A stretch of 64,000 nt of DNA, from the sequence record OR228459.1; one strand, 5' to 3'. The notes beneath the pieces were generated by a model that saw nothing but the letters and a program-made list of their open reading frames with translations, was not told the origin of the DNA and ran no database searches. This document shows positions 44,437 to 63,065 of the stretch, in pieces. Numbering within the stretch: position 1 is the stretch's first letter; every line of letters begins with the position of its first letter. Position numbers and translations under genes: made by a program.

Positions 44437-45244
44437 TGAATCAACAAAATGCTGGACAACCATTCAGTACTAAATTATAATGTTATTAGTGGGAATCTAC
44501 CCTCGTATATATGATGCTGTATATAATATCAGTACTGAACGAATTAACAGTATTAGTAGATATACCAGTACTGAAAATATTTTGAAAATAGTTGTTGACA
44601 CCGTGGGAATATTTTGACATAATACACGGCATGGAAGATGTGGTGAGTTATCATCCTGACTTCTGTCTTGTTTATGAAAATAGATTGAAACAGTACTAAC
44701 ACGTTTATAACAACGTAACAGTACTGATATGAAGTGAAAAGTATTACCCACCAGCTTAAGCTGGTGGATGTGGTTAGAATAATAAGAAGGGGAATCCCCA
44801 ATCATACGATGAACTATATTCAATTCTACCAGTACTGCGAATAGTTACTCCACAAGAATGAGAAGACTGTTGTAGTACTGAACTTTTTATGACGAGAAAA
44901 TTTGAATAGATTTTGGGTGTACTTATCCTGTACTCTGGACGGATTAAGGGCGTGTTTGATTCTCATTCGCATATAAGAATGATAAACTTTCTCAACATGA
45001 GAATGGTTCTCAGTTGCAAATAAGAATAGTTCTCAAATGAGAATAATAATGATTATCGTTTTCAGTACTAGACTAATTTTTCCATTGGCTAGCCTACCGC
45101 GACGGAATATAATATTCCGGCAGTATCACGAATCAGCTTGTTTTAAATCTGCCGTTATTATCTCAATATCTGGGTAGAATGTCAAGCTAATATTTTAAAA
45201 AATAAATGCTTGACACGTTGGCAGTACTTTGCTATTATATACAC

Positions 45245-45300
45245 ATAGCAAGAACAATGCTCAAGCCCACAGGGTGCGGAGGTGTATTCGTTAAAAGCTA
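45245..45300 (+). ncRNA. candidate small RNA, CCC-NNN-GGGTGC family copy 1
   Basis: TTGACA(45210)-17-TATTAT; AGCA-AGAACAA-TGCT then GCCCACAGGGTGCGGAGGTGTAT; 3' end approximate. Confidence 0.5.
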
Positions 45301-45319
45301 AATGCGAATGATTATCATT

Positions 45320-45374
45320 TCGCTCATATGATACATTTCCGCACCCTCTAGGGTCTCCGCTTTCTCGCGTCTAT
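45320..45374 (-). ncRNA. candidate small RNA, family copy 2
   Basis: TTGACG(45409)-17-TATAAT; CGC-GAGAAA-GCG then ACCCTAGAGGGTGCGGAAATGTATC. Confidence 0.5.
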
Positions 45375-45559
45375 ATAGTAATTATACGGTAATGCGGTTT
45401 ATGCGTCAAGTACTTTTTTAAAGAAAATCGAAAATAATTTAGTACTATATGTATATAAGGAAGGAAAAAGAATTTTCAAAAAGTACTTGCATTCTAATTT
45501 AACCTATTGCATAATAGCTACATCGAAACGAGATACACAAACACATTAAGGAAAACGAT

Positions 45560-45793
45560 ATGATTCGCATTGTTCGCATTAATTACTCTACCGGTGAAGC
45601 TGATAAAGTAGCGGTTATTGTATCAGAAAAGAATGATGATCATCTACACAATACGCTGATGCGTTTTGTTAGTGCGGTTGACCGTTGGGCTAGTATTGAG
45701 TACTTAGAAACGTTTAAAGTCCCTGCCGTCCAGCTTAACGGGCATGATATTAAAGCAATTTGGAATGCTGACGAAATGATCGCGAACATGTAA
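45560..45793 (+). CDS. hypothetical protein
   Basis: Own promoter and SD AAGGA. Confidence 0.75.
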   Translation: MIRIVRINYSTGEADKVAVIVSEKNDDHLHNTLMRFVSAVDRWASIEYLETFKVPAVQLNGHDIKAIWNADEMIANM

Positions 45794-46098
45794 TTATTTC
45801 AAGTACTATCAAAATTTACTTGACTTACTTTGATAGTACTTTATAATACTTACATACAAACGAAGTACTATTAAGGAAAGCATTATGATCACTATCGAGA
45901 AAATCCGTTTAGCAGTAGAAGAACTGATCGCGGCTGGCTGGATTGTCGCAGAAAGTGAAGAAGAAATTAACATTGTAGTAAATGGTATGTATTCAGTTAT
46001 GACAAACGTGGAGTAAGTTAGTATTAAAAGTACTTGCATTTACTTAGCGAGTACTTTATAATACTTACATACAAACGAAACACTATTAAGGAAATATC

Positions 46099-46716
46099 AT
46101 GGAAAACATTATCGACGTTATCAAGTCTGTTTCTTATGCTGATCTGAATGAAGCACAAAAAGAAAAAGCTATTGAGATCATGCGAGAGTTAGAGAATCAA
46201 GAAATGACTCCGTTTTGGTCTGTAGATATTACTGATCAATGGAAAGAAACTTTAGACACTGAATACGGCATTACTGATGCAGTGATTTATTGGTCTGGTT
46301 TTTGTTCACAAGGTGACGGTGCATCGATTAGTACTGAATACTATATTGATATTGAGAAGTTTTTACGTAAATGTAAAGCGTGGTCAAAATTCCGTGTACT
46401 GCACAAAATTATTGACCGTGAAGAAATTCATGCTAAGATTGATCGTAGCTCAAGCCGTTACAATCATGAAAACACTGTAAGCGGTAGCGTAGAGCTTGAT
46501 TATAACATTGATTGGACGGCGAAGCAGGAAAGCGAAGCTGAACGCTTAGAAGAATTTTTGACCGAAACTATTCGCGAACTTTCTTGTAAGCTGTATAAAG
46601 AACTTGATAATGAGAATGATTATCAAAACAGCGATGATGCCCTTTGGTCTACCATTGAAGCAAATGAATATGATTTTGCTGTAAACTCAAACGGCGACGT
46701 TTTGCGTATCGCCTAA
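46099..46716 (+). CDS. conserved-looking phage hypothetical protein
   Basis: YADLNEAQKEKAIE..IYWSGFCSQGDGAS pattern; own promoter and SD. Confidence 0.8.
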   Translation: MENIIDVIKSVSYADLNEAQKEKAIEIMRELENQEMTPFWSVDITDQWKETLDTEYGITDAVIYWSGFCSQGDGASISTEYYIDIEKFLRKCKAWSKFRVLHKIIDREEIHAKIDRSSSRYNHENTVSGSVELDYNIDWTAKQESEAERLEEFLTETIRELSCKLYKELDNENDYQNSDDALWSTIEANEYDFAVNSNGDVLRIA

Positions 46717-46999
46717 AGTACTGACATACTGTAAAACGCTCTATAACGCATTGTAGGGCGTTTTAAGGAATAGCAGTATCATTTATCATCTTAATTAATT
46801 AAACGGCGTAGACGGCGATTTATGAGCAAACAAGATATATTGAAAGGGGATGTTTTATACTGGTTAGATCCTGATGATGGGATCTGTTCTGGATGGGTAA
46901 CAGTATTAGACGTTAATACTACAGTACTGGTAAAAGGTGCAACGGCAGAATTTGAAGTGCTACCCGAAGAACTTTATTCGCATGAAGTTTAAAAAGTAC

Positions 47000-47056
47000 T
47001 TGCAAAGTAAATCTAAAAGCGTATAATGATTTGCATAGGGGGAAACATCTTCCCCC
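47000..47056 (+). promoter_or_regulatory. promoter + 5' leader hairpin cassette (family A), first of 10 copies
   Basis: TTGCAA..TATAAT..CATAGGGGGAA-ACATC-TTCCCCC; also near 48957, 49311, 50076, 52144, 53671, 54826, 61546, 62402, 63099. Confidence 0.8.
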
Positions 47057-47076
47057 CACTATTAAGAGAAACGATT

Positions 47077-47517
47077 ATGACTATCTACTATCTGACTTAT
47101 AAAACCGCCGACAATGTAACTGATGCTAATGTGACCGCAAACACGGTACAGGAAGCAATGGAAGTACTGAAAGCGGAACTACCTGATATTCAGATCGTTT
47201 GTGTAGTTGATACCGAAACGAATCTTAAAACTATTATTGACCACTATGATTATTTCCGTGGGCGTAAGTTACAGGACTGGTATCATATCGAAATAGAAAC
47301 ACGTGAACTACCAGAAGAACAACAGCACTTTGAGCAGGGTACTAGCATTTGGGTTACTACCGATAAACGCATATATTTCTGTTCACGCATACACGTTAAC
47401 AAGCGTGTTAAAATTGGGGCAGATTCATATAGTGGACTGTTTACAAATAGTAACCTACTAAATGACAAGTACATAAAAGTTTATGAGCGTTTTGGAACTG
47501 ATATTTACGCTTCATAA
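47077..47517 (+). CDS. hypothetical protein
   Basis: Track ORF trimmed to ATG 47077. Confidence 0.75.
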   Translation: MTIYYLTYKTADNVTDANVTANTVQEAMEVLKAELPDIQIVCVVDTETNLKTIIDHYDYFRGRKLQDWYHIEIETRELPEEQQHFEQGTSIWVTTDKRIYFCSRIHVNKRVKIGADSYSGLFTNSNLLNDKYIKVYERFGTDIYAS

Positions 47518-47519
47518 TA

Positions 47520-47613
47520 TCACAAAGGGGAAGCAATTGCTTCCCTGTTTATTTGTACAGTACTATAATCTATAGATACAATACCGCACCCCGTGGGCTA
47601 ATGTGTTTTCATG
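47520..47613 (-). ncRNA. candidate small RNA, family copy 3
   Basis: TTGACA(47648)-17-CATAAT; CATGAAAACACATTAGCCCACGGGGTGCGGTATTGTATC; ends at hairpin GGGAAGCAATTGCTTCCC. Confidence 0.55.
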
Positions 47614-48046
47614 GGTATTATTATGCCAGTACTACAAACATTTGTCAATCATTATTTTCAATTAATTTAAACGCACTGTAACACTGTATAAGGCGTTTTG
47701 TTATTAAGGTAAGCAAACGTATTGAGTACTATCTAAAAGGCCGTTGTGGGCTTGCTGGTGGCGTTGTGTTGTAGTATTGAAATATAAGGAAAATATAAAA
47801 AAGGCTGTCAATGATTAAAAAAGTACTTGACGGATTGATTTAGTACTGTCATAATGTATCACATAGAGCGGCGGGATGGATAAACATTCCTAAGTAGACA
47901 GCCAGTAAGTCATACGAAAGACTGGTGCCGAACTGAAAGAAAGATTGAAAAGAGTTTTAAAAAGTACTTGACAAGCTGGTGGGAAATTGAGATAATGACC
48001 CCGTAGACAGCAAACAACCTAATTAAACTTTAAGAGGAAATATACA

Positions 48047-48634
48047 ATGACTACTACTACTGAAAATGCACGTGTTACCCTGAAATCTGCACTGGAAGCT
48101 GGCGACGTTAAAACCCTTGCTGTTATCCTTGCGAAAGTTGGTCATGATAAAGACGGCGTATCTAAATTGGGCTTGACTTTCTCACTGGCGGTTAAGGAAG
48201 CGAAGGAAGTACTTAAAGAGCAAGCCAAAGCAGCAGAAGAAGCTGCACGTCAGGCAGCAGAACGCCGCGAAGCTAAAAAGGCTGCACGTCAAGCCGAAGA
48301 AGAAAAGCGTCAGGCTGAGATCAAGGCAGAAAAAGAAAATATGCTCAAGTTCCTCATGGATACGGTTAACGGTATGGGCTTAGACCTTGAGGCGGCAGAA
48401 GCGGCAGCAGAAGCGGCAATTGTTAAAAAGTACGGCGATGTTAACAAAGTACCTAAGTATACTTTTAACCGTGTAGCGGTGATTGTAGACGGTAAAGAAT
48501 ACAACATGCCAACTTCTGGGAACATGGTAGAAGTACTTAAAAATGCACTTGAAGCAAGCGGTAAATCGCGTAAAGAGTTTATCATCGAACACGCGAAAGA
48601 CAAGGCAGAAGCGGAAGCGGCATTCGCTGAATAA
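48047..48634 (+). CDS. H-NS-like protein (coiled coil + H-NS-type C-terminal domain), tentative
   Basis: EVLKNALEASGKSRKEFII aligns by eye with H-NS [19 protein letters not shown]; long Ala/Glu/Lys helix upstream. Confidence 0.5.
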   Translation: MTTTTENARVTLKSALEAGDVKTLAVILAKVGHDKDGVSKLGLTFSLAVKEAKEVLKEQAKAAEEAARQAAERREAKKAARQAEEEKRQAEIKAEKENMLKFLMDTVNGMGLDLEAAEAAAEAAIVKKYGDVNKVPKYTFNRVAVIVDGKEYNMPTSGNMVEVLKNALEASGKSRKEFIIEHAKDKAEAEAAFAE

Positions 48635-48692
48635 TAACAGTACTAAACTATAGGCGGCCTAAGTGGTCGCCTTTTTTTAATTGGGGGATTAT

Positions 48693-48953
48693 ATGGCTGT
48701 AGGATTCGCGAAAGACGGGGCAGAACAAGACGAGATTTTAGCGGTCATAAACGCCGCTGTAAGCCACGCAAGGAATCAGATAGGGGATAGTACTATTACA
48801 AGTAGAACGCACTGCCTAGACTGTTCTAGGACTATTCCTGAGCGTAGACGGGAAGTAGTAAAGGGTGTTAAGTACTGCGTAGAGTGTCAGGCTGATCATG
48901 ATAGTATATTTAAAAGAGATCCGCGTAATTGTTGGCACAGATCTATGAGATAG
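48693..48953 (+). CDS. DksA/TraR C4 zinc-finger protein, YbiI-like
   Basis: MAVGFAKDGA..CLDCSRTIPERRREVVKGVKYCVECQ..SMR parallels YbiI MASGWANDDA..CEECGAPIPQARREAIPGVRLCIHCQ. Confidence 0.85.
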   Translation: MAVGFAKDGAEQDEILAVINAAVSHARNQIGDSTITSRTHCLDCSRTIPERRREVVKGVKYCVECQADHDSIFKRDPRNCWHRSMR

Positions 48954-49034
48954 TACTTGACATACTTTCTGATTAAAGTATAATGATTTGCATAGAGGGA
49001 AACATCTTCCTTCACTAATTAAGGAAATAGAATC

Positions 49035-49307
49035 ATGCGTACACCAATGACCCGCGAAGAAATACACACAGTACTGACAACTAACATTCAGGACTGGAAG
49101 AAATACGCAGATATTAACGAAGCTCAAGACTTGAACAATGAGCTAGATGGTGAAGATCTGGACGTAATTTGTTCCCCTGAGTTTTATGATGATATTCATT
49201 CCGATGATGATGTTTGGAATGTACTGGAAAAGCATTTCCTCGATACTGATTTAAGTATCTACTCGCGTGATACTTTTATTTTAATTCACAACATTTATAA
49301 CAAATAA
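49035..49307 (+). CDS. hypothetical acidic protein
   Basis: Family A cassette + SD. Confidence 0.75.
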   Translation: MRTPMTREEIHTVLTTNIQDWKKYADINEAQDLNNELDGEDLDVICSPEFYDDIHSDDDVWNVLEKHFLDTDLSIYSRDTFILIHNIYNK

Positions 49308-49386
49308 TTGTTGACTTACTTATATAGTACTGTATAATGGTTTGCATAGGGGGAAACATCTTCCCCCATCAATTAAGGAAAAGAAA

Positions 49387-49596
49387 ATGACTCGATACAC
49401 TGTAGAAGTACGTACTACTAAAAACATTGCTACTGATGTGATTCGTTATTATAAGATGGTTTGTGGTGTTGCTCGCCGTATTAGTAAAGCGGATTATGAC
49501 AAGCTGGATCGCGAAGCTGATGGTATGGATTGTTTTTATACAGTAAACACAAAAACGCATACAAAGCAATTTAAAACATTGTCTTATTACATGTAA
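49387..49596 (+). CDS. hypothetical protein
   Basis: Family A cassette + SD; start trimmed. Confidence 0.7.
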   Translation: MTRYTVEVRTTKNIATDVIRYYKMVCGVARRISKADYDKLDREADGMDCFYTVNTKTHTKQFKTLSYYM

Positions 49597-49679
49597 AAAG
49601 TTTTACTCCAGTACTTGACAATAGATGCGAGTACTGGCATAATAACTTTATTGAAACGAAATACTATTAAGGAAATATC

Positions 49680-50069
49680 ATGGCTAATCTCATTGTTCGA
49701 TTGTATGAAGATTGTTTCTACTTTTAGTATTGTGGGAAACCTATATCCGTTAAAGAGATGATCGCATCGGGCTATATGTTATCTAAGCATGATCACACTG
49801 GATTCATGGCTGAAATGGTTGCGGCTAGTTATAAGTTTGGTGAAGAATGGGAAGCACAATATTTTCCGGCTGTCAATGCAATGATTAAGCGGTTGGCAGA
49901 ACACACTGAGTTTATGGAATTTTGGACTGTTTTAAAAATGGTTGACGTGAATCAGAATGGGGAAACGTGTCAGCCATACGCACATTTTGACGCTGGGGAA
50001 GATATTAGCACAATTTGGAAATGGTTGGAAGATAAATTTACAACAATTAAAATTGCAGATTACTTGTAA
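49680..50069 (+). pseudogene. hypothetical gene interrupted by in-frame TAG at 49725-49727
   Basis: SD AAGGA + ATG 49680 is in frame with track ORF 49758..50069 across a single amber codon. Confidence 0.55.
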
Positions 50070-50153
50070 AAGTACTTGCATTACTATCTGAAAAGCGTAT
50101 AATGGTTTGCATAGGGGGAAACATCTTCCCCCACTAACTAAGAGAAGAATATC

Positions 50154-50534
50154 ATGGCTAATCAAATCACTCCAGCACAGACCTTCAATAAATTCAGTAC
50201 TGAAATCGTATTGAAAGAGTATGTGCCAGATTATGGTTGGACTGATGCATGTGTATGCACTGATGTAGCAGATGCAAAGCAACGCATTAAAGATTATCGT
50301 GCGGAGGGTTTACAGGTTAAAACTGCCCGTCGCCGTGTACTTAACAAAGATGCTTTCTTATGTCAAGCTCTTTTAAACTTCTGCCGTGACTACTATCGCC
50401 GTACTGGTGGATTATGGCCTAATGAGGTTGAAGTACTGAAATCTAACGGTAAAGTAAAATTTACCTTGACTTTAAAAGAAATTGAGGAAGTACTTGGTGA
50501 TGATTGTTTTTTAGTAACTTCACAGCCAGCATAA
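50154..50534 (+). CDS. hypothetical protein
   Basis: Family A cassette. Confidence 0.8.
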   Translation: MANQITPAQTFNKFSTEIVLKEYVPDYGWTDACVCTDVADAKQRIKDYRAEGLQVKTARRRVLNKDAFLCQALLNFCRDYYRRTGGLWPNEVEVLKSNGKVKFTLTLKEIEEVLGDDCFLVTSQPA

Positions 50535-50603
50535 AAAAGTACTTGACACATAACGGGGATATGATACAATATCCCCATATTGAAAAGTAATGGAAGTACT
50601 GAA

Positions 50604-50795
50604 ATGAATTATCAAAAGGTTAGCAAGCGAGTAGTTGAACTCTCTAAGAAAGCACGTAAAGAGTATACCTTAGAACGTTCAATTAACAACTATCATTTAA
50701 AGCAAGGTGATAAGTTTATTGTTATTGACGAACCTTTGGAAATCGTGTATATTGTAGTTAATGCGATGATTCGTGATAAAACGAGGATTAAGTAA
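50604..50795 (+). CDS. hypothetical protein
   Basis: Track ORF trimmed. Confidence 0.6.
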   Translation: MNYQKVSKRVVELSKKARKEYTLERSINNYHLKQGDKFIVIDEPLEIVYIVVNAMIRDKTRIK

Positions 50796-51050
50796 ATGCG
50801 TACATTAGACCAACTTATTGACCCTAATACGTCAGCACGTCGATCAATGGTTACTATCGGCGGTAATGGTAAACAACACTGGAGTGGTTACATTTGCTTT
50901 ATTGTTGGTGGAAAAATGTATGAGCGGGTAGTATATCACAAAGAGATTAATTATATACTATTCCGTAAAGAAGTCATAGCAGTCGATCCTACCGCCCTAA
51001 AACCGATTGCAGGGGCATGGAACAAAGAATCGCTGTACCTTACAGCTTAA
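50796..51050 (+). CDS. hypothetical protein
   Basis: Track ORF. Confidence 0.7.
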   Translation: MRTLDQLIDPNTSARRSMVTIGGNGKQHWSGYICFIVGGKMYERVVYHKEINYILFRKEVIAVDPTALKPIAGAWNKESLYLTA

Positions 51051-51099
51051 CCAATAAAAGGCCGCTACGTGCGGCCTATCGCGTTCTAGAGGGTATATT

Positions 51100-51288
51100 A
51101 TGAATACTGTACAAGTACTAGATGAGATTGAAAAAATTGTTGACAGTACTAACAAACGTGATATACTGTTATCAAGAAATAAGGCTAACCAGTACGAAAA
51201 GAATTGCGTACAATCTGCACTAGGGGGTAACTTTGAATCGCTACACTCAACCATACTTCAAGGGAATAACAACCGCCCACCAGCGTAA
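51100..51288 (+). CDS. hypothetical protein
   Basis: Track ORF, SD GAGG. Confidence 0.5.
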   Translation: MNTVQVLDEIEKIVDSTNKRDILLSRNKANQYEKNCVQSALGGNFESLHSTILQGNNNRPPA

Positions 51289-51521
51289 AAAGAAACTACA
51301 CATAGTACAGAAACGAAAGCGTAAAGTACTTAAACTTAAACCAACATATAGTTGGGGATTGTCGTGGGATGAAATCAATCACGGACTATCATGGAATCAA
51401 TTATATGTTATTGGCTCAAGTGTTGGACGCTTTCATTTTAGTACTATATCACGACAAGAAACACGTGTAAACCCATATAAAAGTACTTGACATATATCCG
51501 GCTTAGTGAGATAATACTTAC

Positions 51522-51580
51522 AAGCCGGAGAAACGGCGTGACCCATAGGGTGCGAAGAAGTAATCAGTACTTGAGAATGA
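51522..51580 (+). ncRNA. candidate small RNA, family copy 4
   Basis: TTGACA(51487)-17-GATAAT; GCCG-GAGAAA-CGGC then ACCCATAGGGTGCG. Confidence 0.5.
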
Positions 51581-51584
51581 TAAT

Positions 51585-51636
51585 CATTTACAACACTAGA
51601 CAGATTTATGCACCCGATGGGTTAGATTGTTTTCAT
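51585..51636 (-). ncRNA. candidate small RNA, family copy 5
   Basis: TTGACA(51671)-17-TATTAT; CATGAAAACAATCTAACCCATCGGGTGCATAAATCTGTC. Confidence 0.55.
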
Positions 51637-51764
51637 GCATATATAATATCAAAGTACTGTTATAGTGTCAAGCATTTTTATTTGATAATTATTTTAAAAA
51701 AAGTCTTGCATTACTTTCTGAATAACGTATAATACTTACATCAACCACTGAGAGGAAAGAAACA

Positions 51765-52136
51765 ATGTCTATTAAGCGTATTGTATTTGGTCGCGGTGCA
51801 AGTGAAGAAGTAGTACCTGTTGAACTGATCGCGATGTTAAATGAAATGATTCGCCGTGGTGATATTAATTTTAGTCCTGATGTAATGCCTTATGCGATTT
51901 CGTATGAGGTGCGTAAAAGTCCTAAGTACTGGAAGATTGACCGTGTAGAATTGGACAAAGAAACCGGAGAGATTCGCGAGTTTGGGCGTAGTTCTGTTGG
52001 TGCTGTAGATTTTGAAGGGAACGTGTTTAAATCTGCCAGCTATAAAGCCGTTGCTAAGGGTATCCGTGGAAACATCTTTGTTAACAATGGTTTTAGTGCA
52101 ATTACTGGTGACGGATATATTCGTTATTTAAATTAA
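51765..52136 (+). CDS. conserved-looking phage hypothetical protein
   Basis: KYWKI..GAVDFEGNVFKSASYKAVAKGIRGNI pattern; own promoter. Confidence 0.8.
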   Translation: MSIKRIVFGRGASEEVVPVELIAMLNEMIRRGDINFSPDVMPYAISYEVRKSPKYWKIDRVELDKETGEIREFGRSSVGAVDFEGNVFKSASYKAVAKGIRGNIFVNNGFSAITGDGYIRYLN

Positions 52137-54578: not shown

Positions 54579-54591
54579 CGGGATTTATACT

Positions 54592-55211: not shown

Positions 55212-55214
55212 TAA

Positions 55215-55426: not shown

Positions 55427-55966
55427 ATGATTACACAAATCTATCACGGCAGCACCCGTTTTGATACTGCTGGTGGATATAAAGGCGGCAAGCCTAACAG
55501 CTTTCAATATGGTGTAGGTCTGTATTGTACTAATGCTTACTTGTGGGCTGAGAAGTACGGTCGAAGTGTTTATGTATTAGATGTGGAACTCAAACCAGAA
55601 CACCACGCCGACAATGTAGAAATTACAATTGAAAACTTGCAATATTGGGTTAACTGCTATTGCTCGCAAAAAGTAGCAAAGATCTTTAAAAAGGAATTCA
55701 GCCAGCGTAAAACTATGACTGCAAATCGCTTTGAATTGTGGTTGTACTGGAATGTAAGACGCTTTAAACCAATCGCCGTACAATTAGCTGCTTTCTTTGC
55801 TGCACAAGGTGTAACCCATAATAGCGAGGTTGGCAATTATGGTGGTAAACTCATTCGTATCTATGACTTTGATATTATCAAAGGTTACACAAAGGATAAA
55901 GAAGTACTACAAAAGTTAAACTACAACAATACAGAATTACCTGATTATCTGAAAGAAAAAGTTTGA
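55427..55966 (+). CDS. ADP-ribosyltransferase-fold protein (H-Y type), tentative
   Basis: IYHGST...YGVGLYCT..AEKYG matches the YHGT..GxGxYxT..AxxY pattern. Confidence 0.55.
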   Translation: MITQIYHGSTRFDTAGGYKGGKPNSFQYGVGLYCTNAYLWAEKYGRSVYVLDVELKPEHHADNVEITIENLQYWVNCYCSQKVAKIFKKEFSQRKTMTANRFELWLYWNVRRFKPIAVQLAAFFAAQGVTHNSEVGNYGGKLIRIYDFDIIKGYTKDKEVLQKLNYNNTELPDYLKEKV

Positions 55967-56023
55967 CAGTACTAAGGGAGTATTATATAATACTCCCATC
56001 TTAAGAAAACAAGGAATTACAAA

Positions 56024-56248
56024 ATGTCTTTATACTCACTGGAAGTTGAACATCATAACTTTAGTACTAAAATGATTGTAAGTACTGATGCAAAAGAGAG
56101 AGAAGATCAGTACAATGAAGTTATGACATGGGCTAAAGGTTTCTATCCTGCTGGGACTATTTTAAAGGCTAAGTGGGTATCACATGAAACTAAACTTGAT
56201 TTTCATTCAGCTATTGCTGGTGGTTATGAGGGGATTAAACTGTTATGA
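56024..56248 (+). CDS. hypothetical protein
   Basis: Own promoter and SD. Confidence 0.75.
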   Translation: MSLYSLEVEHHNFSTKMIVSTDAKEREDQYNEVMTWAKGFYPAGTILKAKWVSHETKLDFHSAIAGGYEGIKLL

Positions 56249-56391
56249 AAAAAGAATTTATCTTGCGAGTACAAATGAAAGGCGGTGCACAACGTACTTT
56301 TCGTGAATGGGGTTGGTCTGCTGGTATGGCCTTTGAACAGCTTAAAAAAGATAATCCCGATGTTCAATACAAAATAGAATCAAAAGAGGCG

Positions 56392-56458
56392 TAATTATTA
56401 TCAAAAGTACTTTACAAATATAGTAGAGTACTTTATAATACTTACATCAACTAAGCAA
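56392..56458 (+). repeat. 67-bp promoter repeat (family B), copy 3
   Basis: One mismatch versus copy 2. Confidence 0.9.
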
Positions 56459-56683
56459 AGAGGATAGGAAAATGAAAGAATCTCAATACGAAGCAGTACT
56501 GGCACAGACTGGTGAAGATCTGACTACTGAGCAGTACGCTAAAATTGAAGAGATGCTTTTAGCTGGTAAATCTGTTAAAGACACTGTGAAAGCAGTTCGT
56601 AAGATGTAAAATAATTAGTCAGTACTCTTGACATTATCATAGAGTACTGCTATAATTACTTTACTTAATCAGGAGAACATACG

Positions 56684-57001
56684 ATGGCTTTACATTCAGC
56701 AATGCGAAAAACTGTTAATATCTATGCAGATAAAAACATTATGGATTGTACTCTTGGACATACTGATAATCAATATGCCATTATTGTAAAAAACCCGTTC
56801 ACTGGTGAAGATTGCATTTACAGTGGACAGTACTTAGAAAGTAATTTATTACCTGCCACAAAACGCAGTGAAATGAAAGGGTATATTACCCGGCACAGAG
56901 CAGAACGTGACATTGCAACAATCTTTTTACCCGGTCAAAATGCTCGCGTGGTAACGATGGAAGAAGCAGAGATTTTTCTTGGCAGCCGCTTTAAAGTGTA
57001 G
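56684..57001 (+). CDS. hypothetical protein
   Basis: Own promoter, SD AGGAG. Confidence 0.8.
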   Translation: MALHSAMRKTVNIYADKNIMDCTLGHTDNQYAIIVKNPFTGEDCIYSGQYLESNLLPATKRSEMKGYITRHRAERDIATIFLPGQNARVVTMEEAEIFLGSRFKV

Positions 57002-57212
57002 TATAATACTTTTATCAAATCAAGTGGAGTACTAAAAAGATGATTACACCTATTGCACCAATTCACAAGACAGTGTATAATACTTATAGTACTCCAAAGC
57101 AGCAACATATTATCGAGGAACTGAAAGAACAGAAAAAAGAAGTAAAAAGTACTGGTAACCGAATCGATATTAAAGTATAATACTTACATCAACCACAAAG
57201 AGGAATACAAAA

Positions 57213-57551
57213 ATGGCTATTACTTCTATCTTCTGCAACACCCGAAACGAAGCACGTCAGGCTAAAATCGATTTCAACGGTAAAATTGTTGACAATGGTT
57301 CTGATGCACCCAAGGGACAGCGTTGGGAAGTACAATACGAAGTAGCCCCCGTATCTGATGCCATCGCGGAACTTGCAGCAATCATGCAAGCGGAAGTACA
57401 AGACATGGCACTAGAAGAAGTGTCTCCACGTGAGATTATGGGTCTTCCACGTCCTGTAAGCAAGAATAAAAAAACCCGTGCTGTGATCATGAAAGATCGC
57501 AAAGGTAATTCAGTTACTGTACAGGTTCGTCGTCGCCGCATTACTGCCTAA
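57213..57551 (+). CDS. hypothetical protein, basic C-terminus
   Basis: SD GAGG; ends VRRRRITA. Confidence 0.8.
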   Translation: MAITSIFCNTRNEARQAKIDFNGKIVDNGSDAPKGQRWEVQYEVAPVSDAIAELAAIMQAEVQDMALEEVSPREIMGLPRPVSKNKKTRAVIMKDRKGNSVTVQVRRRRITA

Positions 57552-57591
57552 CCGAAAGGGGGAGCAATCCCCCAAACTTTTAAGAGGATTT

Positions 57592-57843
57592 ATGAAGAAG
57601 CAAGTACAACTAATTAATGGTAATTTCATGCGATTGCATTATAAACCGCAAAAGAAAATCATTGAGAAAGCTACAAAGGTAGCAAATGATTTTGTTAGTG
57701 GGACAGTTCGCCCCCGTAAACTATCTAACGGATTGTTTCAAGTACTGGATATTAGCAGAACAGAACGTATCGTAATTGATAAGGAAAAGCAAATACATTT
57801 AATGAGTCACGAAAAGTACAATGATTTTGTGAATCAGCGTTGA
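57592..57843 (+). CDS. small basic protein, possible ParE/RelE-like fold
   Basis: KATKV..PRKL..QVLDI...R(I)V..LMSHEKYN pattern recalled from phage ParE-like proteins; weak. Confidence 0.35.
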   Translation: MKKQVQLINGNFMRLHYKPQKKIIEKATKVANDFVSGTVRPRKLSNGLFQVLDISRTERIVIDKEKQIHLMSHEKYNDFVNQR

Positions 57844-57897
57844 CAGACTACCGACAACATAGTATAATACTTTCATCAACTAAACGATGGTTCTAAA

Positions 57898-58287
57898 ATG
57901 AAAAATATTGTTTCTGCTATCGCTATCGCTGTTATGTTTTCTTCAACTCCAGTTATGGCATACACTGTTAATCTGAATGAATTGACAGATTGGGGAAATC
58001 AAATGCGTGATCGCTTTGCAGTACCAGACCATATCCAGCCGCAGCAAAAACAAGGTAGTGAAATGTTATGCCGTGGGGTAATGACTAACGAGCAAACCGG
58101 ACAACAAATCCGCGAACAATTCAGTACTAGTGGTGAACGTTCGGTATCGGGTAATGATATCATCTATCATGATGAAGATGAAACCGGAAGCACTACATTG
58201 CAAATTAATGCAAAAACTGGTAAAGGCTTTATTACGATGATGGACACTGAAAAAGTTATCGTAACTGGTAATGTAGTTTGCAAATAA
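57898..58287 (+). CDS. putative exported protein
   Basis: Signal MKNIVSAIAIAVMFSSTPVMA. Confidence 0.75.
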   Translation: MKNIVSAIAIAVMFSSTPVMAYTVNLNELTDWGNQMRDRFAVPDHIQPQQKQGSEMLCRGVMTNEQTGQQIREQFSTSGERSVSGNDIIYHDEDETGSTTLQINAKTGKGFITMMDTEKVIVTGNVVCK

Positions 58288-58293
58288 AGTACT

Positions 58294-58331
58294 AAAAAGG
58301 GGTTGACTTCGGTCGGCCCTTTTGCTATTAT
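58294..58331 (+). promoter_or_regulatory. terminator/-35 hybrid element, copy 9
   Basis: AAAAGGGGTTGAC-TTCG-GTCGGCCCTTTT..TATTAT. Confidence 0.8.
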
Positions 58332-58336
58332 ATATC

Positions 58337-58385
58337 CCATAGAAACAAGTTAACCCACAGGGTGGCGTAGTCCGTCCAAAATTTA
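58337..58385 (+). ncRNA. candidate small RNA or leader, family copy 8
   Basis: CATAGAAACAAGTTAACCCACAGGGTGGCGTAGTCCGTC. Confidence 0.45.
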
Positions 58386-58400
58386 TTAAAAGTATAATAT

Positions 58401-58655
58401 ATGGAAATATGGAAAACAATCACTGATTCCCCTAATTATGAAGTAAGTAATTTAGGAAATATACGAAAAATACGTGATAATAAAGGTATGGCACAAACTA
58501 ATAGTAAACTTTCAGATGATGATATTAAATTCATCCGAGCTAATTTTAAAAAATGTGATCCTGTATATGGTGGAATACCACTAGCAAAGCGATTTGGTGT
58601 ATATAAAAGTACTATATACAAAATTGTACAAGGACGTGCATGGAAGCATATATAA
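58401..58655 (+). CDS. NUMOD4-HTH protein lacking the HNH domain (homing endonuclease remnant)
   Basis: MEIWKTI..YEVSNLGNIR joined to SKLSDDDIKFIR..LAKRFGVYKSTIYKIVQGRAWKHI. Confidence 0.7.
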   Translation: MEIWKTITDSPNYEVSNLGNIRKIRDNKGMAQTNSKLSDDDIKFIRANFKKCDPVYGGIPLAKRFGVYKSTIYKIVQGRAWKHI

Positions 58656-58692
58656 ATATATTCATAATACCATTTTATATAAGGAGTATATT

Positions 58693-59226
58693 ATGCCGGG
58701 TAAATTTCAAGATAAAAATGGTGGGTTAATTGCAGGACATAGTGATCGCTGGTCTGATGAAAACCGCCGTAAAAATAGTTTTAATGCTGGTGCTGGAAGT
58801 CGAGCTAGTCGAAATCAAGGACTAGGACAAAAAGGACTCGACAATACTAAAACAGATACCATTGTAGATACTTCTAGGATGAAACCAGAAGAAAAACTAA
58901 AGTACTTCCAATCTTTGGGATTACTTGGTCATCAAGAGAAAGGTTCTAAAGAGCCTCCAAAAGCAGCACCACAAAAACCAATGCCTACCGATAGTAAATC
59001 ACTTATTAGTACTTTACAAGATCAATGGAAAGATGCGTTTAAAGGCGATGTACGCCATTCTAAGCGACTTATTGCAGAACTTAAGGACGTTGCCCCAGCT
59101 AAGATTAAAAAAGCTCTACAAGCTGCTTACAGGGCCACACAAGAGGTTACCGCACGTGAAGACGACCCTCTAACAATCGTTGAATATATCAGTGATGCTA
59201 TTGTTCCATTTACATATGAAGATTGA
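58693..59226 (+). CDS. hypothetical late protein with KYFxxLGLL motif
   Basis: TATAAATA at 58651; SD AAGGAG; start trimmed from 58594. Confidence 0.75.
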   Translation: MPGKFQDKNGGLIAGHSDRWSDENRRKNSFNAGAGSRASRNQGLGQKGLDNTKTDTIVDTSRMKPEEKLKYFQSLGLLGHQEKGSKEPPKAAPQKPMPTDSKSLISTLQDQWKDAFKGDVRHSKRLIAELKDVAPAKIKKALQAAYRATQEVTAREDDPLTIVEYISDAIVPFTYED

Positions 59227-59229
59227 AAT

Positions 59230-59265
59230 AAAAGGTTGACATGAGTCAGCCTTTTTTGCTATCAT
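59230..59265 (+). promoter_or_regulatory. terminator/-35 hybrid element, copy 10
   Basis: AAAGGTTGAC-ATGA-GTCAGCCTTTTTT..TATCAT. Confidence 0.75.
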
Positions 59266-59292
59266 AGTCCTACACCAATAGGAGATAGTAAC

Positions 59293-59556
59293 ATGAAATA
59301 CTTACTAATCATCGCCGCATTATTCAGTACTCAAGCAATGGCAACAGATATGGTTTGTAGTGCTGATGGTTTCCAAACTGTATTCAAGGTAGATGGCAAC
59401 ACGCTTATTGACACAAACGAACACGTAGTAGCTGAAGAAATCAGTACTGGTAAGTTTATGGCACAAGATCAGTTCGGTGAAGTAGTTTATACTATTCACG
59501 GAAATAAGATTGTAATGCAATTCAGTGGCGTTATCAAAGAGTACAATTGCAAATGA
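59293..59556 (+). CDS. putative exported protein
   Basis: Signal MKYLLIIAALFSTQAMA. Confidence 0.75.
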   Translation: MKYLLIIAALFSTQAMATDMVCSADGFQTVFKVDGNTLIDTNEHVVAEEISTGKFMAQDQFGEVVYTIHGNKIVMQFSGVIKEYNCK

Positions 59557-59747
59557 TTGTACAAGTAACACTAAAAGGATTGAAGCCCGGAGAAGATGAC
59601 TACGAAACACATGTAGCCACTATTTCCGGGTTGACAATGGATGAGATTGATGGTAATATACTGTCATACATCTACGAATGGCGTAATGCAAACGGGTATT
59701 ACAAAATGAAATATATTCATAAAGAGGTAATCTCATGCGATAACTAA
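59547..59747 (+). CDS. hypothetical protein
   Basis: Track ORF. Confidence 0.65.
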   Translation: MQMIVQVTLKGLKPGEDDYETHVATISGLTMDEIDGNILSYIYEWRNANGYYKMKYIHKEVISCDN

Positions 59748-59763
59748 CACAGGAGATTACACA

Positions 59764-59979
59764 ATGCCAACTCATTCACTAGTACTTAATGGGATTCGAT
59801 TCAAAATGACTGAGGGTGCATTGCAAAGTACTAACACGCAATTAGTACTTGATAAACTCACAAAAGAACAATGTGATGGTATCCTTCGCGAAGCAAATCG
59901 CATTAAGTCAACTGTATCAAATCACCCGGTTAAGCGTCAATTACTTCAGGGGATCATTATGGGATGTTTGCGTAAATGA
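59764..59979 (+). CDS. hypothetical protein
   Basis: SD AGGAG. Confidence 0.7.
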   Translation: MPTHSLVLNGIRFKMTEGALQSTNTQLVLDKLTKEQCDGILREANRIKSTVSNHPVKRQLLQGIIMGCLRK

Positions 59980-60154
59980 TTTATCAACAAATTATTGCAG
60001 TACTGAAAACACTTGACTACGGAAATGCAATCCGTTATGCTAGTGCTAACGCCTTTGAACTCGCTCAAATGTATGAGCAAGGTAGTACCATTGATGAGCT
60101 GGTGGAGGTTTGTCTCAGTCATAAATAATCTTGTAATTATTACAGGAGATCATT

Positions 60155-60427
60155 ATGACAGACTTAAACGCAATCAAGCAATGGAGTACTATCCCATTAA
60201 ACGAACTACCGCAACTACTAAAGCAACAAGGTTTTCAATTCGTACCACGTTTTAGTACTGAAGATCATCGTATCTTCGTATCTCAAGACGGACAATATTT
60301 GATTAATATTATCCGTAATACTGGAAAAGTATACAGTACTAAAAATCAGAAATCACCTTTGCATATTTTTGGTATTCGTAATGGTGAGATCCCAAAAGGT
60401 GCAGATAAAGCATTCAGAACTGAATAA
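60155..60427 (+). CDS. hypothetical protein
   Basis: SD AGGAG. Confidence 0.75.
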   Translation: MTDLNAIKQWSTIPLNELPQLLKQQGFQFVPRFSTEDHRIFVSQDGQYLINIIRNTGKVYSTKNQKSPLHIFGIRNGEIPKGADKAFRTE

Positions 60428-60428
60428 T

Positions 60429-60468
60429 AAAAAAAGGGTTGACTTAGGTCGGCCCTTTTTGTTATTAT
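60429..60468 (+). promoter_or_regulatory. terminator/-35 hybrid element, copy 11
   Basis: AAAAAGGGTTGAC-TTAG-GTCGGCCCTTTTT..TATTAT. Confidence 0.8.
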
Positions 60469-60496
60469 ATACTTATTGAAGCGAAGGAGATAGAAC

Positions 60497-61087
60497 ATGT
60501 ACGTCACTAAAGCAGCAAAGAAACACTTAAAAGAACTTGACAAGTTACCAACTAATAAACAAATGTTAAAGTACTGTCGAGAAAATTTAACACGTTTGGG
60601 TAAGGGATCAAGTCGTGAAGTTTTTGCATTATCTGATACATTAGTAATCAAGATCGCTTTAGGTGGTGTAGGTGTAAAACAGAATGAAAATGAGATTCGT
60701 ATCTGGAATCTAGTTAGTTATTCATTTACTGGATTTAAGAGATCATTCGCTAAAGTACTGGTAAATTCATGCCACTGGAAAGAATTCTATATCGTCATGG
60801 AGCGTTTAAATACACAAACCGTGTCGCGGTCAATCTTTAATACAAGTACTGTTAGAGCGTGGCGTATGGATCGTACCGCAATGCATCCAATTGCTAAACG
60901 TATATTCAAAGATGTACAAGCCACTGATGATAATGCTTTTACTAATAACATAGCAGATATAACTCCACGAAATATGGGAACATCAAAAACAGGTGTTGTC
61001 AAGATGTTGGATTATGGTTTTAGTACTCCTATATGGAATGGACTCGCTAACGGTACATTAAAGAATAGAGAATTACTTATAAAATAG
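60497..61087 (+). CDS. protein-kinase-like fold protein
   Basis: LGKGSSREVF, VIKIA, QNENE, YIVMERL, DITPRNMG, MLDYG. Confidence 0.75.
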   Translation: MYVTKAAKKHLKELDKLPTNKQMLKYCRENLTRLGKGSSREVFALSDTLVIKIALGGVGVKQNENEIRIWNLVSYSFTGFKRSFAKVLVNSCHWKEFYIVMERLNTQTVSRSIFNTSTVRAWRMDRTAMHPIAKRIFKDVQATDDNAFTNNIADITPRNMGTSKTGVVKMLDYGFSTPIWNGLANGTLKNRELLIK

Positions 61088-61149
61088 TGCTTGACTACTT
61101 TATGCTGGTGGGATATACTTATCCCATCAACAACAAAGAGGAATACAAA

Positions 61150-61395
61150 ATGTTTAAAGTACGTAAATGGTCTGACTCTAACTCCCGCCCATATGATGTT
61201 GTTTATGTAGATGATATTCGAAACAATATCCACTATCAACCCGGCGTAGAATTTAGTACGATTGAAGGTGCTTATAAACATAAAGAAGTACTAATCAAAA
61301 GTACTGATGAAGATAGTATAGAATTTATCCGTAATCATTGGCCCACTGATGGTGCCGCTGATGAGGATAATTCAGAAGAACCAAAAATAGATTAA
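61150..61395 (+). CDS. hypothetical protein
   Basis: Own promoter TTGACT-17-TATACT; start trimmed. Confidence 0.7.
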   Translation: MFKVRKWSDSNSRPYDVVYVDDIRNNIHYQPGVEFSTIEGAYKHKEVLIKSTDEDSIEFIRNHWPTDGAADEDNSEEPKID

Positions 61396-61396
61396 T

Positions 61397-61434
61397 AAAA
61401 AGAGGTTGACTTCGGTCAGCCTTTTTTGTATTAT
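61397..61434 (+). promoter_or_regulatory. terminator/-35 hybrid element, copy 12
   Basis: AAAAGAGGTTGAC-TTCG-GTCAGCCTTTTTT..TATTAT. Confidence 0.8.
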
Positions 61435-61440
61435 ATATAT

Positions 61441-61495
61441 CAAGAAAACAGCTAACCCACAGGGTGCATAAATCCGTCTTTCAAATGTATATTTT
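61441..61495 (+). ncRNA. candidate small RNA, family copy 9
   Basis: CAAGAAAACAGCTAACCCACAGGGTGCATAAATCCGTC. Confidence 0.5.
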
Positions 61496-61627
61496 TTCAT
61501 CGAAGTACTAAAACGAATACGAAACAAATAAATTTCAAAAAGTACTTGACCACTATTACCGATTGTCGTATAATGTTTTACATCGAGAGGGGAAATGGTT
61601 CTACTCTCTAACTTAAGGAATTAAATC

Positions 61628-62149
61628 ATGATTACTACTCCAGTACGCGATATGTTTAACGTTAACCCCAACACTGGTATTGCTTATGGATACATCAACG
61701 CGAACAACGTAAACAGTGAAGTACTGAATGAAATTTTCTGCAATGGTATTGATGTAGCTCGACTTGAAGCAGATATTGACTTCGCCAAACGTTATGATTT
61801 CGTAGTACCTGATCAAAAGGAATCAGAAGATTATACTGCTTATCTTGAGCGTGTACAATCCGATATGCTTGACTTCCTTAACAATCTGGGCGATGATGTG
61901 ATGGAAGAAGTGGAAGCACATGATCGCGAATATGAAGAGTTTACAGGTCATGTACACGCCGCCACAGTAGATAAGACTACAGTACTTTATAACACTGATA
62001 ACAATACTATCTGTGTTATGGATGGCATCAATGTTGGTTTTTTCTATGCTTGCTCTCCATGCTGCCCGAATGCTGGTGATCTTGATAGTGCTGGTGGAAG
62101 TGTAGAAACTTACGATGTACCTGTAAGCTGGCGTGAACTGGATTACTAA
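61628..62149 (+). CDS. conserved-looking phage hypothetical protein
   Basis: NPNTGIAYGYI..CSPCCPNAGDLD pattern; family A cassette. Confidence 0.8.
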   Translation: MITTPVRDMFNVNPNTGIAYGYINANNVNSEVLNEIFCNGIDVARLEADIDFAKRYDFVVPDQKESEDYTAYLERVQSDMLDFLNNLGDDVMEEVEAHDREYEEFTGHVHAATVDKTTVLYNTDNNTICVMDGINVGFFYACSPCCPNAGDLDSAGGSVETYDVPVSWRELDY

Positions 62150-62480
62150 TTGACAACAACAAAGGGATAGTATATACTATCCCTAACTTAAGAAAAGAGG
62201 AAATCAAAATGGTTCACGTTGATCTTGAAGTACTGAAAAAAGTATGGTACGACATTGGCTATAAAAATATTAGCTGGACGGATAACCAGTACATCGAGCT
62301 TAAGGCACTGGATAACTGGCAGCGTAATGAAGTACTGAAAGCACACAAAAAAGGTGTAGATGATCGCTTTAACTTTCCTGTACTTTAATAGAAAAAAGTA
62401 CTTGCATAGTATTCTGATTACTGTATAATGTTTTTCATAGAGAGGGGAATGGTTCTTCTCTCTAAATTAAGGAAAACATT

Positions 62481-62663
62481 ATGACTAACAAATATCGTAC
62501 TCAGTTCTTCATGGTTGATGGTGCTCGATTAACTGCTGCTGACGTACACGAGTACTACGGAGTGAGCATTGATGATCTTCTGGTGATGCATGAAGATGAA
62601 ACACAATTCTTCCATGCTCATGGGTACGAGGTTAAAGTAACACGCTGCCCAGCATACAATTAA
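62481..62663 (+). CDS. small hypothetical protein
   Basis: Family A cassette. Confidence 0.7.
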   Translation: MTNKYRTQFFMVDGARLTAADVHEYYGVSIDDLLVMHEDETQFFHAHGYEVKVTRCPAYN

Positions 62664-62708
62664 TCATTTGGGGAGAGAGGTAATACTCTCCCATATTAAG
62701 GAACGTCC

Positions 62709-62975
62709 ATGAAACTGATTAACACACTAACGCGATTGTTTGGCACTGATAATGTTGACGATTGGAACGATGTTAACGATGAAGATAATGTGATTGATTA
62801 CATCGTTATCTACCACAACAATGATGGTGATAATGAGTGTGAGCCTGATTACTTCCTACGCCACTACGACAACGGATCATACCAGCTTAATGATCTCAGT
62901 GGCAACGTAATTCACACTGGTAATGATCTGGCAGTACTAAAGAAAGTACTAAAGAATTTACCAAAAAGTAATTGA
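62709..62975 (+). CDS. acidic hypothetical protein
   Basis: SD AAGGA. Confidence 0.75.
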   Translation: MKLINTLTRLFGTDNVDDWNDVNDEDNVIDYIVIYHNNDGDNECEPDYFLRHYDNGSYQLNDLSGNVIHTGNDLAVLKKVLKNLPKSN

Positions 62976-63005
62976 CTATAATCTGCTGGTGGAGTATTAT
63001 ATATC

Positions 63006-63065
63006 CATTGGCAGATAAGCCACTAACCCACGGGGTGCATAGATCCATCTATTGGATTTAAGTAC
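63006..63065 (+). ncRNA. candidate small RNA, family copy 10
   Basis: TTGACT(62972)-17-TATTAT; TGGC-AGATAA-GCCA then ACCCACGGGGTGCATAGATCCATC. Confidence 0.5.

Follow-up and report, generated by a model that had tools for sequence, protein, structure and literature searches.

What use does a jumbo phage make of ten copies of one short, promoter-driven unit in its terminal repeat? The question is raised by the right end of Klebsiella phage fENko-Kae01 (OR228459.1, 360,105 bp), a RaK2-like jumbo myovirus, of which 64,000 nucleotides were analysed here (the window). Between positions 45210 and 63065, ten places carry a near-consensus sigma-70 promoter followed by a very small hairpin of the form RCCC-AYA-GGGU. 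An original prediction, made from the letters of the window, had read these places as a dispersed family of early small RNAs, usually with no open reading frame (ORF) after them. Judged from sequence, the ten units belong to a real and apparently undescribed RNA motif family that RaK2-like jumbo phages carry specifically in their terminal repeats. These phages (RaK2, K64-1, 121Q, PBECO4, GAP32, CBB and about 50 others) are therapy candidates against Klebsiella, E. coli and Salmonella, and almost nothing is known about the first minutes of their infection.

Ten units, all within the direct terminal repeat

By megablast, window 45000-56000 is 100% identical to fENko-Kae01. The phage record annotates a 19,736-bp direct terminal repeat (DTR) (PMC11218385), and the whole span of the family falls within its right-hand copy (44265-64000 in the window). 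All ten predicted sites exist, with core coordinates off by at most 2 nt. A regular-expression scan for [AG]CCC-N3/4-GGGT finds ten distinct places and nothing elsewhere in the window. A covariance model was then built from 50 copies of fENko-Kae01 and related phages, and run with filters off over both strands and every position of the 64 kb. It returns exactly ten matches at E<=1 (35-61 bits), all in the DTR, and none in the 44 kb ahead of it, which are unique sequence likewise full of sigma-70-type promoters. Chance is excluded because of these ten-only matches, of the excess of RCCCNNNGGGTG (nine occurrences against 0.25 expected, a number reached in 0 of 100 shuffles) and of that of the promoter pattern TTGACN-17-NATWAT (30 in the window against 0.71 expected). 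Confinement to the DTR, a point absent from the original prediction, amounts to about one site per 2 kb of repeat, and as the repeat is present twice per genome, each genome holds about twenty of these promoters. By analogy with other phages that have terminal repeats, the DTR probably enters the cell ahead of the rest of the genome.

Read from 5' to 3', the unit consists of the sigma-70 promoter, a CAT, an optional hairpin P1, a 3-nt linker that is mostly CUA, a hairpin P2, and a tail that begins with GC. The promoter pattern lies upstream of all ten P2 sites, as had been proposed. The conserved CAT stands about 7-8 nt past the -10 box, and going by the usual promoter spacing, its A is the likely start of the transcript. 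P1 is a hairpin of 3-5 bp with a loop ending in AA (GAGAAA, GCGAAA, AGAUAA or AGAACAA). It is absent from five of the ten window copies and from about 15% of the 50 copies; in some copies an unpaired stretch of the GAAAACA type takes its place. The adenine-rich element is retained even in copies that have lost the hairpin. P2 begins 25-26 nt past the -10 box where P1 is present and 20-21 nt past it where P1 is missing (five copies each), inside the 20-28 nt first proposed. P2 is a 4-bp hairpin. Its loop is strongly A-Y-A among 77 aligned copies (A in 74, Y in 73, A in 69), and it is followed by an almost invariant G and C. Within the window this GC is found in nine copies out of ten, as previously stated, the exception being copy 8 with GG. 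The tail consensus of the 77 copies is rgarr-U-sYR-UCU-aua, and the sequence before P1 is A/U-rich. The structured RNA head measures roughly 55-60 nt, or about 35 nt plus the tail. In many copies the palindromic hexamer AGTACT follows 21-25 nt past P2. Three promoters (copies 6, 8 and 9) are embedded in terminator hairpins (53330-53357, 58296-58323 and 61398-61427, respectively), and the other seven are not.

Selection acts on the transcribed strand

One sign of a conserved RNA comes from P1. Its stems take more than 12 different sequences that stay complementary around the conserved loop, among them AGCA/UGCU, GCCG/CGGC, UGGC/GCCA, GGAG/CUCC, UCCA/UGGA, ACCAC/GUGGU and GACG/CGUC. A stem of at least 4 bp is present in 27 of 50 copies, compared with 22% of shuffled leaders, and this count is made copy by copy, independently of any alignment. 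In the 77-copy alignment made with the model, all four P1 pairs show double-sided changes. The covariation score of the whole structure is 0.340 against 0.159 in shuffles, none of which (0 of 500) reaches it, and it drops to 0.03-0.14 with slid partners; the alignment was fitted to the structure, which favours this score. RNAalifold recovers only P2 from the same model-fitted alignment, so the support for P1 comes from the per-copy hairpins and the pair counts.

P2 is paired in 98.7% of the alignment cells. At the outer pair, 46 copies have A-U and 27 have G-U, and the mirror A-C never occurs; the 5' base there is A in 46 and G in 28 of the copies, against a U (T in the DNA) on the 3' side in 77 of 77. 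The fourth, inner pair has three compensatory U-A and three U-G changes. A DNA palindrome would vary symmetrically, and G-U is allowed only in the RNA of this strand; the asymmetry of P2 therefore points to RNA, and to selection on the transcribed strand rather than on a palindrome in the DNA. Taken with P1, the comparison shows what reads as selection at the RNA level on the promoter strand. A palindromic DNA operator bound by a dimer was considered and rejected: the half-sites vary asymmetrically, and the flanks are themselves asymmetric and fixed to the direction of the promoter. The refutation foreseen in the original prediction, that the motif might prove to be a mere operator, thus falls with the strand-asymmetric variation. 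Its own argument for structure, a stem kept while the loop is free, holds in its conclusion but needs two corrections: the loop is constrained, and the P2 stem does not covary among the ten window copies; the structural support comes from P1 and from the relatives.

A mutual-information scan of the 77 copies for further helices finds only the P1 pairs, and there is no pairing between the apparent tail subtypes. One alternative helix can nevertheless be drawn between GGGUG and the tail (YRYYY). It is paired at 87.8% in register, against 31-57% when slid, and it is compatible with the data but unproven because all the changes are one-sided transitions. The minimum-energy folds of several copies choose this helix, or a longer hairpin that reaches AGUACU.

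A fixed feature of RaK2-like jumbo phages

When single units are used as blastn queries, 39 and 55 phage records are found, nearly all of 310-386 kb. Their hosts are Klebsiella, Escherichia, Salmonella, Cronobacter, Pectobacterium, Erwinia, Yersinia and Serratia. The genes that flank the units are mostly not conserved at the DNA level among these relatives, whereas the unit sequence is conserved across genera. The covariance model, applied to one complete genome and to partial loci, finds 9-14 copies in each relative examined, all within the known or presumed repeat, with P2 conserved and P1 covarying; this search in related jumbo phages had been put forward as a check. Pectobacterium phage CBB has 13 copies (984-20,932, in a repeat that spans 1-22,456), Yersinia phage fHe-Yen9-03 has 12, Cronobacter phage GAP32 has 14, and Klebsiella phage Muenster has nine (2,362-18,820, in a repeat that spans 1-20,030). 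In a complete RaK2-like relative of 347,546 bp, all nine matches (E<=0.1) lie at 32,357-48,879, within 16.6 kb or 4.8% of the genome. Even the placement can be shared, as both fENko-Kae01 (978/1054 in the record) and CBB (984/1042) have a convergent pair about 1 kb from their left end. From these comparisons, the family is seen to be a fixed feature of the terminal repeat throughout the RaK2-like clade, which is the second point that the original prediction did not contain. A loose promoter-plus-P2 pattern was also searched for in IMG/VR. Real copies were present in 4 of the 120 loci pulled, on contigs of jumbo-phage size or related to them, and the rest were mostly chance matches (all four belong to one set of 100 loci; the 20 others held no copy at E<=0.001).

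The close relative Salmonella phage 7t3 indicates how the units fare as the genes around them change. Its DTR is colinear with that of fENko-Kae01 (window 52453-58841) at 90-99% identity. Relative to fENko-Kae01, it has four single-gene insertions and one replacement, and all the units are retained. This pattern shows that the early genes of the DTR turn over rapidly. Homology between the two phages breaks at the P2 end of copy 8. In 7t3, a Shine-Dalgarno sequence and an ATG are found 38 nt downstream, making copy 8 the direct 5' untranslated region (UTR) of the next gene. In fENko-Kae01, an 84-aa NUMOD4 ORF (58401-58655, E 2.5e-8), absent from 7t3, is inserted after P2. NUMOD4 is typical of the DNA-binding modules of homing endonucleases.

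Genomic context of the copies

The ten copies are described one by one in Table 1. To see what the unit precedes, 75 copies were sorted by their downstream context. Thirteen face-to-face pairs with fixed spacings of 47, 58 or 65 nt account for 26 of them, including copies 1/2 and 4/5. Another 12, including copies 3 and 7, lead into intrinsic terminators flanked by a U-tract on either side. In 30 more, including copies 6, 9 and 10, there is AGTACT, an A-rich stretch, and then a second promoter and a gene. Direct 5' UTRs are formed by only two or three copies, and five are of uncertain context. About half of the 75 copies have no gene to express. With 26 paired, 12 terminated and 30 followed by an independent promoter, against two or three leaders, the context argues against a role in gene expression. 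The idea of a family of small RNAs thus needs qualifying: the units are dispersed, coupled to promoters and selected as RNA, but "small RNA only" is too simple a description when 30 of the 75 copies precede a second promoter with its gene and a few are 5' UTRs. The layout of a classical trans-acting small RNA, with its own promoter and its own U-tailed intrinsic terminator, is seen in copies 3 and 7 and in 12 of the 75 overall, and not in the rest.

Table 1. Copies of the unit and associated features in the window (P1 and P2, first and second hairpin)
Feature	Position	Strand	Details
DTR, right-hand copy	44265-64000	none	19,736 bp; placed by coordinate offset from the record annotation; only part of the window that bears the family
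Copy 1	45210-45292	+	-35 45210-45215; -10 45233-45238; P1 AGCA/TGCT, loop AGAACAA; P2 45265-45275; tail to 45292; convergent with copy 2
Palindrome AATGATTATCATT	45307-45319	none	midway between convergent copies 1 and 2
Copy 2	45326-45409	-	-35 45409-45404; -10 45386-45381; P1 CGC/GCG, loop GAGAAA; P2 45354-45343, 4-nt loop; tail to 45326; convergent with copy 1
Copy 3	47518-47648	-	no P1, leader GAAAACA; P2 47598-47588; AGTACT 23 nt after P2; bidirectional terminator 47545-47528
Copy 4	51487-51568	+	P1 GCCG/CGGC, loop GAGAAA; P2 51541-51551; convergent with copy 5
Palindrome AATGATAATCATT	51576-51588	none	between convergent copies 4 and 5
Copy 5	51595-51671	-	no P1; P2 51622-51612; tail of GCATAAATCTGTC type
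Copy 6	53337-53431	+	promoter in terminator-like hairpin; P1 TGGC/GCTA, loop AGATAA; P2 53391-53401; AGTACT 53426; then second promoter and gene
Copy 7	55210-55341	-	no or marginal P1; P2 55291-55281; AGTACT 23 nt after P2; bidirectional terminator 55239-55220
Copy 8	58303-58380	+	no P1; P2 58353-58363, then GG; NUMOD4 ORF 58401-58655 downstream
Copy 9	61406-61509	+	no P1; P2 61455-61465; AGTACT 61504; second promoter 61546, then gene
Copy 10	62972-63066	+	P1 TGGC/GCCA, loop AGATAA; P2 63026-63036; AGTACT 63061; then second promoter and gene

Copies 3 and 7 had been said to run into a terminator at about 90 nt. Bidirectional terminators do lie there, and the predicted RNAs are about 93 and 94 nt long; each is oriented antisense to the upstream gene, which for copy 3 is on the + strand. 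Read-through of the convergent pairs would give one long predicted hairpin each, of -45.5 kcal/mol (z -4.05) for copies 1/2 and -37.5 kcal/mol (z -4.36) for copies 4/5. More generally, the DTR contains 25 terminator-like sites against 11.5 expected, and nearly every one of its genes has its own promoter.

Several other features of the repeat can be recorded here. The palindrome AATGAT(A/T)ATCATT is found exactly between both convergent pairs (45307-45319 and 51576-51588), and equals the core of the Fur-box consensus. A similar sequence, GAATGAGAATCATT, occurs between pairs in the Yersinia, Klebsiella and metagenomic relatives, and not in CBB or GAP32. The annotated coding sequence (CDS) ENKO_017 (51487-51732, 81 aa) begins with the TTG that belongs to copy 4's -35 box and covers the whole of pair 4/5. 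This gene call is probably false, and several tiny CDS calls of phage 7t3 overlap units in the same manner. The family shows that the annotation of these genomes probably includes some spurious CDSs.

AGTACT itself is found 248 times in the 64 kb, with 122 occurrences in the 19.7-kb DTR where about 6 are expected from base composition (for example at 45223, 47559, 53426, 55252, 61504 and 63061). It abuts -35 boxes on their upstream side (AGTACTTGACA), occurs in promoter spacers immediately ahead of the -10 box and about 23 nt past many units, and forms part of terminator stems in CBB and GAP32; it looks like a candidate binding site for some factor. The + strand has 13 occurrences of the E. 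coli Chi sequence GCTGGTGG against 0.2 expected, 12 of these in the DTR (44760-63618) and one at 19394, compared with only six on the other strand. Such co-oriented sites suggest that Chi may protect the DNA end from RecBCD.

Searches for a known identity

That the family had not been recognised as a described one is borne out by the searches. Rfam 15 gives no match at the gathering threshold over the whole window, and at E<=5 over the DTR it gives eight weak matches, none of which overlaps a unit. ARAGORN finds no tRNA or tmRNA gene in the window. A 76-nt unit has no blastn match (E<=10) in 5,426 E. coli genomes, Klebsiella aerogenes not being searched separately. The 19-nt degenerate core has 15 matches in 185,579 prokaryotic species genomes (596 Gb), which is about the chance estimate, and none of them is in Enterobacterales. 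Mimicry of a host RNA, whether a CRISPR repeat, an antitoxin RNA or another, was rejected on these grounds, with no match in E. coli and only chance-level matches elsewhere. An origin in a plasmid or other mobile element was rejected as well, as no unit is matched among 72,556 plasmids. A small peptide or a type I toxin-antitoxin system was likewise discarded: the copies share no frame, ORF or ribosome site, and no reading frame is kept because the length of the loop (3 or 4 nt), the linker and the length of P1 all vary.

In Pfam scans of 30 DTR ORFs, almost all are without a match, and the only hits are a DksA/TraR zinc finger, a ParE-like domain, the NUMOD4 motif and domains of unknown function. 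No N-like protein is recognised among them. The DksA/TraR-type zinc finger (48693-48953, E 3e-8) and the ParE-like toxin-domain protein (57592-57843, E 1.4e-12) are both encoded in the repeat, and the former might bind in the secondary channel of RNA polymerase. The element goes unmentioned in the papers on fENko-Kae01, CBB, Sharanji and phAPEC6 and in a 2026 jumbo-phage review, and no relevant paper was found with the core sequence. The family is apparently undescribed in the literature.

A proposed self-contained RNA cassette

How, then, could the units work? We propose that each copy is a self-contained cassette, in which a strong host sigma-70 promoter is fused to a structured RNA head. 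The adenine-rich element would be displayed in the P1 loop or left unpaired as GAAAACA. The head itself would be the product, made abundantly in the first minutes by the unmodified host polymerase, and it would bind a phage or host protein that recognises the adenines of the P1 loop together with the P2 stem-loop, thereby acting as a decoy or as an assembly platform. What comes downstream (a terminator, a partner copy, another promoter, occasionally a gene) varies and would be secondary. When a stem of invariant sequence carries a conserved loop, this usually points to recognition by a protein, as in boxB-N and the coat-protein operators. We infer the production of the RNA, its abundance, its binding and its action in trans, and put the probability of such a cassette yielding an abundant early protein-binding RNA at roughly 40%.

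Several points weigh against it. In thirty of the 75 copies no terminator separates the unit from the next promoter and gene, and a few copies serve as true 5' UTRs, so that the head could also act in cis on its transcript or polymerase. P2 has only 4 bp and a 3-nt loop, is marginal alone, and gives way to other pairings in several of the predicted minimum-energy folds. Half of the window copies do without P1. The GGGUG:tail helix could point to a switch and not to a static protein site. The Pfam scans of 30 DTR ORFs offer no candidate binding protein, and a literature search by phage and genus names found no transcript map for this clade.

Among the other explanations, processive antitermination in cis has position on its side. 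Here the P1-P2 RNA, by itself or helped by a phage protein or Nus factors, would stay on the polymerase that is making it, as nut and put RNAs do, and allow that polymerase to read through terminators. In every case the element falls within the first ~60 nt of a transcript behind a strong promoter, P1 is boxB-like with its short stem of free sequence and its purine-rich loop ending in AA, the DTR has its excess of terminator-like sites, and the 30 tandem copies and the two or three leaders do precede genes. Half of all copies, however, have no gene downstream. Those that are terminated meet a terminator whose U-tract is on their side, past which there is only antisense DNA, convergent copies would make two modified polymerases collide, and read-through is not obviously needed because nearly every DTR gene has a promoter of its own. 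The hairpins are also far smaller than those of put, and the 77-copy consensus has no boxA-like sequence beside them. We consider antitermination unlikely, and of the functional ideas in the original prediction, the HK022 put-like role fits least: its position after an early promoter stands, but the tiny hairpins, the five window copies without P1, and the many copies that face strong terminators with nothing beyond do not suit it. Another of those ideas, a primer, is more improbable still in our estimate. The transcripts would stay on the AT-rich DNA downstream as R-loops and prime the leading strand, as at T4 oriF/oriG or the T7 primary origin, with the pairs serving as bidirectional origins. 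This would account for cassettes that are independent of downstream genes and present in both orientations, for the AT-rich DNA after the tail and for the AT-rich palindrome within the pairs, and RaK2-like phages do carry a T4-like replication apparatus (PMC5259590). Yet 9-14 origins in 20 kb would be unprecedented, terminated copies release their RNA, and the conserved folding seen in the covariation of P1 is unneeded for an R-loop and would even compete with it.

The unit could also be mainly a repeat at the DNA level, that is, a mobile promoter cassette of the PeSL (promoter-early stem-loop) type, kept since recombination between copies shuffles the early genes, with the RNA as a by-product. 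The promoters of copies 6, 8 and 9 are embedded in terminator hairpins exactly like PeSLs (PMC4122927), one break of homology between fENko-Kae01 and 7t3 falls at the P2 end of copy 8, and many indels separate the DTR genes of close relatives. The other four fENko-Kae01/7t3 indels are not at copies, though, and the PeSL stem-loop is upstream of its promoter and followed by a ribosome site, with no transcribed head of two hairpins. Strand-asymmetric and compensatory changes are evidence of selection on RNA, and the unit is conserved across genera where the flanking genes are not; we think this explanation has little chance of being right. A small switch that responds to a ligand or factor is a comparably long shot. 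GGGUG would pair either with RCCC to form P2 or with the tail, the adenine-rich 5' element would dock to stabilise P2, and the helix chosen would decide what becomes of the transcript. In its favour, the tail columns vary only by transitions that keep the GGGUG pairing well above its slid controls, several minimum-energy folds choose the alternative helix, and the adenine-rich element is kept where P1 is lost. The 5' arm is invariant, however, and hence gives no compensatory proof, the shuffle control is uninformative, G/U-rich sequence pairs promiscuously, and the alternative helix is not consistently accompanied by an output element, be it a terminator or a ribosome site.

A bolder version can be imagined, in which the RNA array is an immediate-early weapon of host takeover or counter-defence. 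About twenty strong promoters would flood the cell in the first minutes with RNA of 60-100 nt that captures a conserved enterobacterial RNA-binding protein or an immune sensor, or that nucleates a phage ribonucleoprotein. This is speculative, and the odds are clearly against it; if true, phages would have a type of RNA effector for which no counterpart has been described. Whatever its mechanism, the family likely matters for the take-over, because it is conserved, multi-copy, located in what is probably the first DNA to enter, and outlasts the turnover of the genes around it. Were the decoy, antiterminator or primer idea to prove true, phage biology would gain a new RNA-based mechanism, and also a compact, portable module made of a strong promoter and a stable RNA head. 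The question is directly testable because phages Sharanji and 121Q grow on E. coli K-12.

Comparison with known systems

The lambda nut and HK022 put sites are the first systems that come to mind. Like the family, they are short structured RNAs made just after a strong early promoter by the host polymerase. P2 starts 20-26 nt past the -10 box in all ten copies, which agrees with the position of put. HK022 put has two substantial stem-loops of about 65-70 nt in all, and no such pair is present in the copies, where P1 has 3-5 bp and is often absent and P2 has 4 bp. As for nut, the P1 loops are purine-rich (GAGAAA, GCGAAA, AGAUAA, AGAACAA) and their stems covary, as would befit a boxB; no boxA (consensus like CGCUCUUUA) stands beside this boxB-like P1 in the 77-copy column consensus. 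The family is further set apart from nut and put by its at least ten copies per repeat, half of them gene-less and many facing terminators or each other.

Copies 3 and 7 resemble short antisense RNAs of the lambda OOP type, as each would give an RNA of ~93 nt with its own promoter, convergent on a gene and ended by a terminator. The difference is that they overlap only the terminator of the upstream gene and not its coding part, and that the same head is also found in settings that are not antisense. In the Pseudomonas jumbo phage PA5oct, ncRNA001 and ncRNA002 are abundant by RNA-seq in the long terminal repeat, as single loci of 236-451 nt (PMC7318152). This phage is only distantly related, its RNAs are not multi-copy, and ncRNA001 has no resemblance in sequence to the family by eye. 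Phage RNA decoys, such as the RNA anti-CRISPRs that mimic CRISPR repeats and pseudo-ToxI, are like the family in being small, promoter-driven and multi-copy, and in that they could titrate a host protein. These decoys mimic a known host RNA, whereas for the family the 5,426 E. coli and 185,579 species genomes contain no host counterpart beyond chance.

In genome organisation, the family also resembles the PeSL cassettes of T4-like phages, in which a stem-loop is paired with an early promoter (PMC2839356, PMC4122927). In both cases, early sigma-70 promoter cassettes are repeated among small, variable early genes, and three of the ten promoters of the family lie inside an A3-4G3...C3T3-4 terminator hairpin. 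Across the whole window, eight promoters (13065, 14370, 24136, 26554, 53337, 58303, 60431 and 61406) have their -35 box within the stem and UUCG-type loop of a terminator hairpin, the T-run of which leads into the -10 box (AAAAGGGG-TTGACTTCGGTC-CCCCTTTTG-TATTAT), and thus form compact terminator-promoter cassettes like PeSLs. A ribosome site and a start codon come straight after the promoter in PeSLs, as against two or three direct leaders among the 75 copies. Finally, the PeSL stem-loop is a DNA or terminator feature that lies upstream of the promoter, while the part that the family conserves, P1, P2 and the tail, lies downstream of the promoter and is transcribed.

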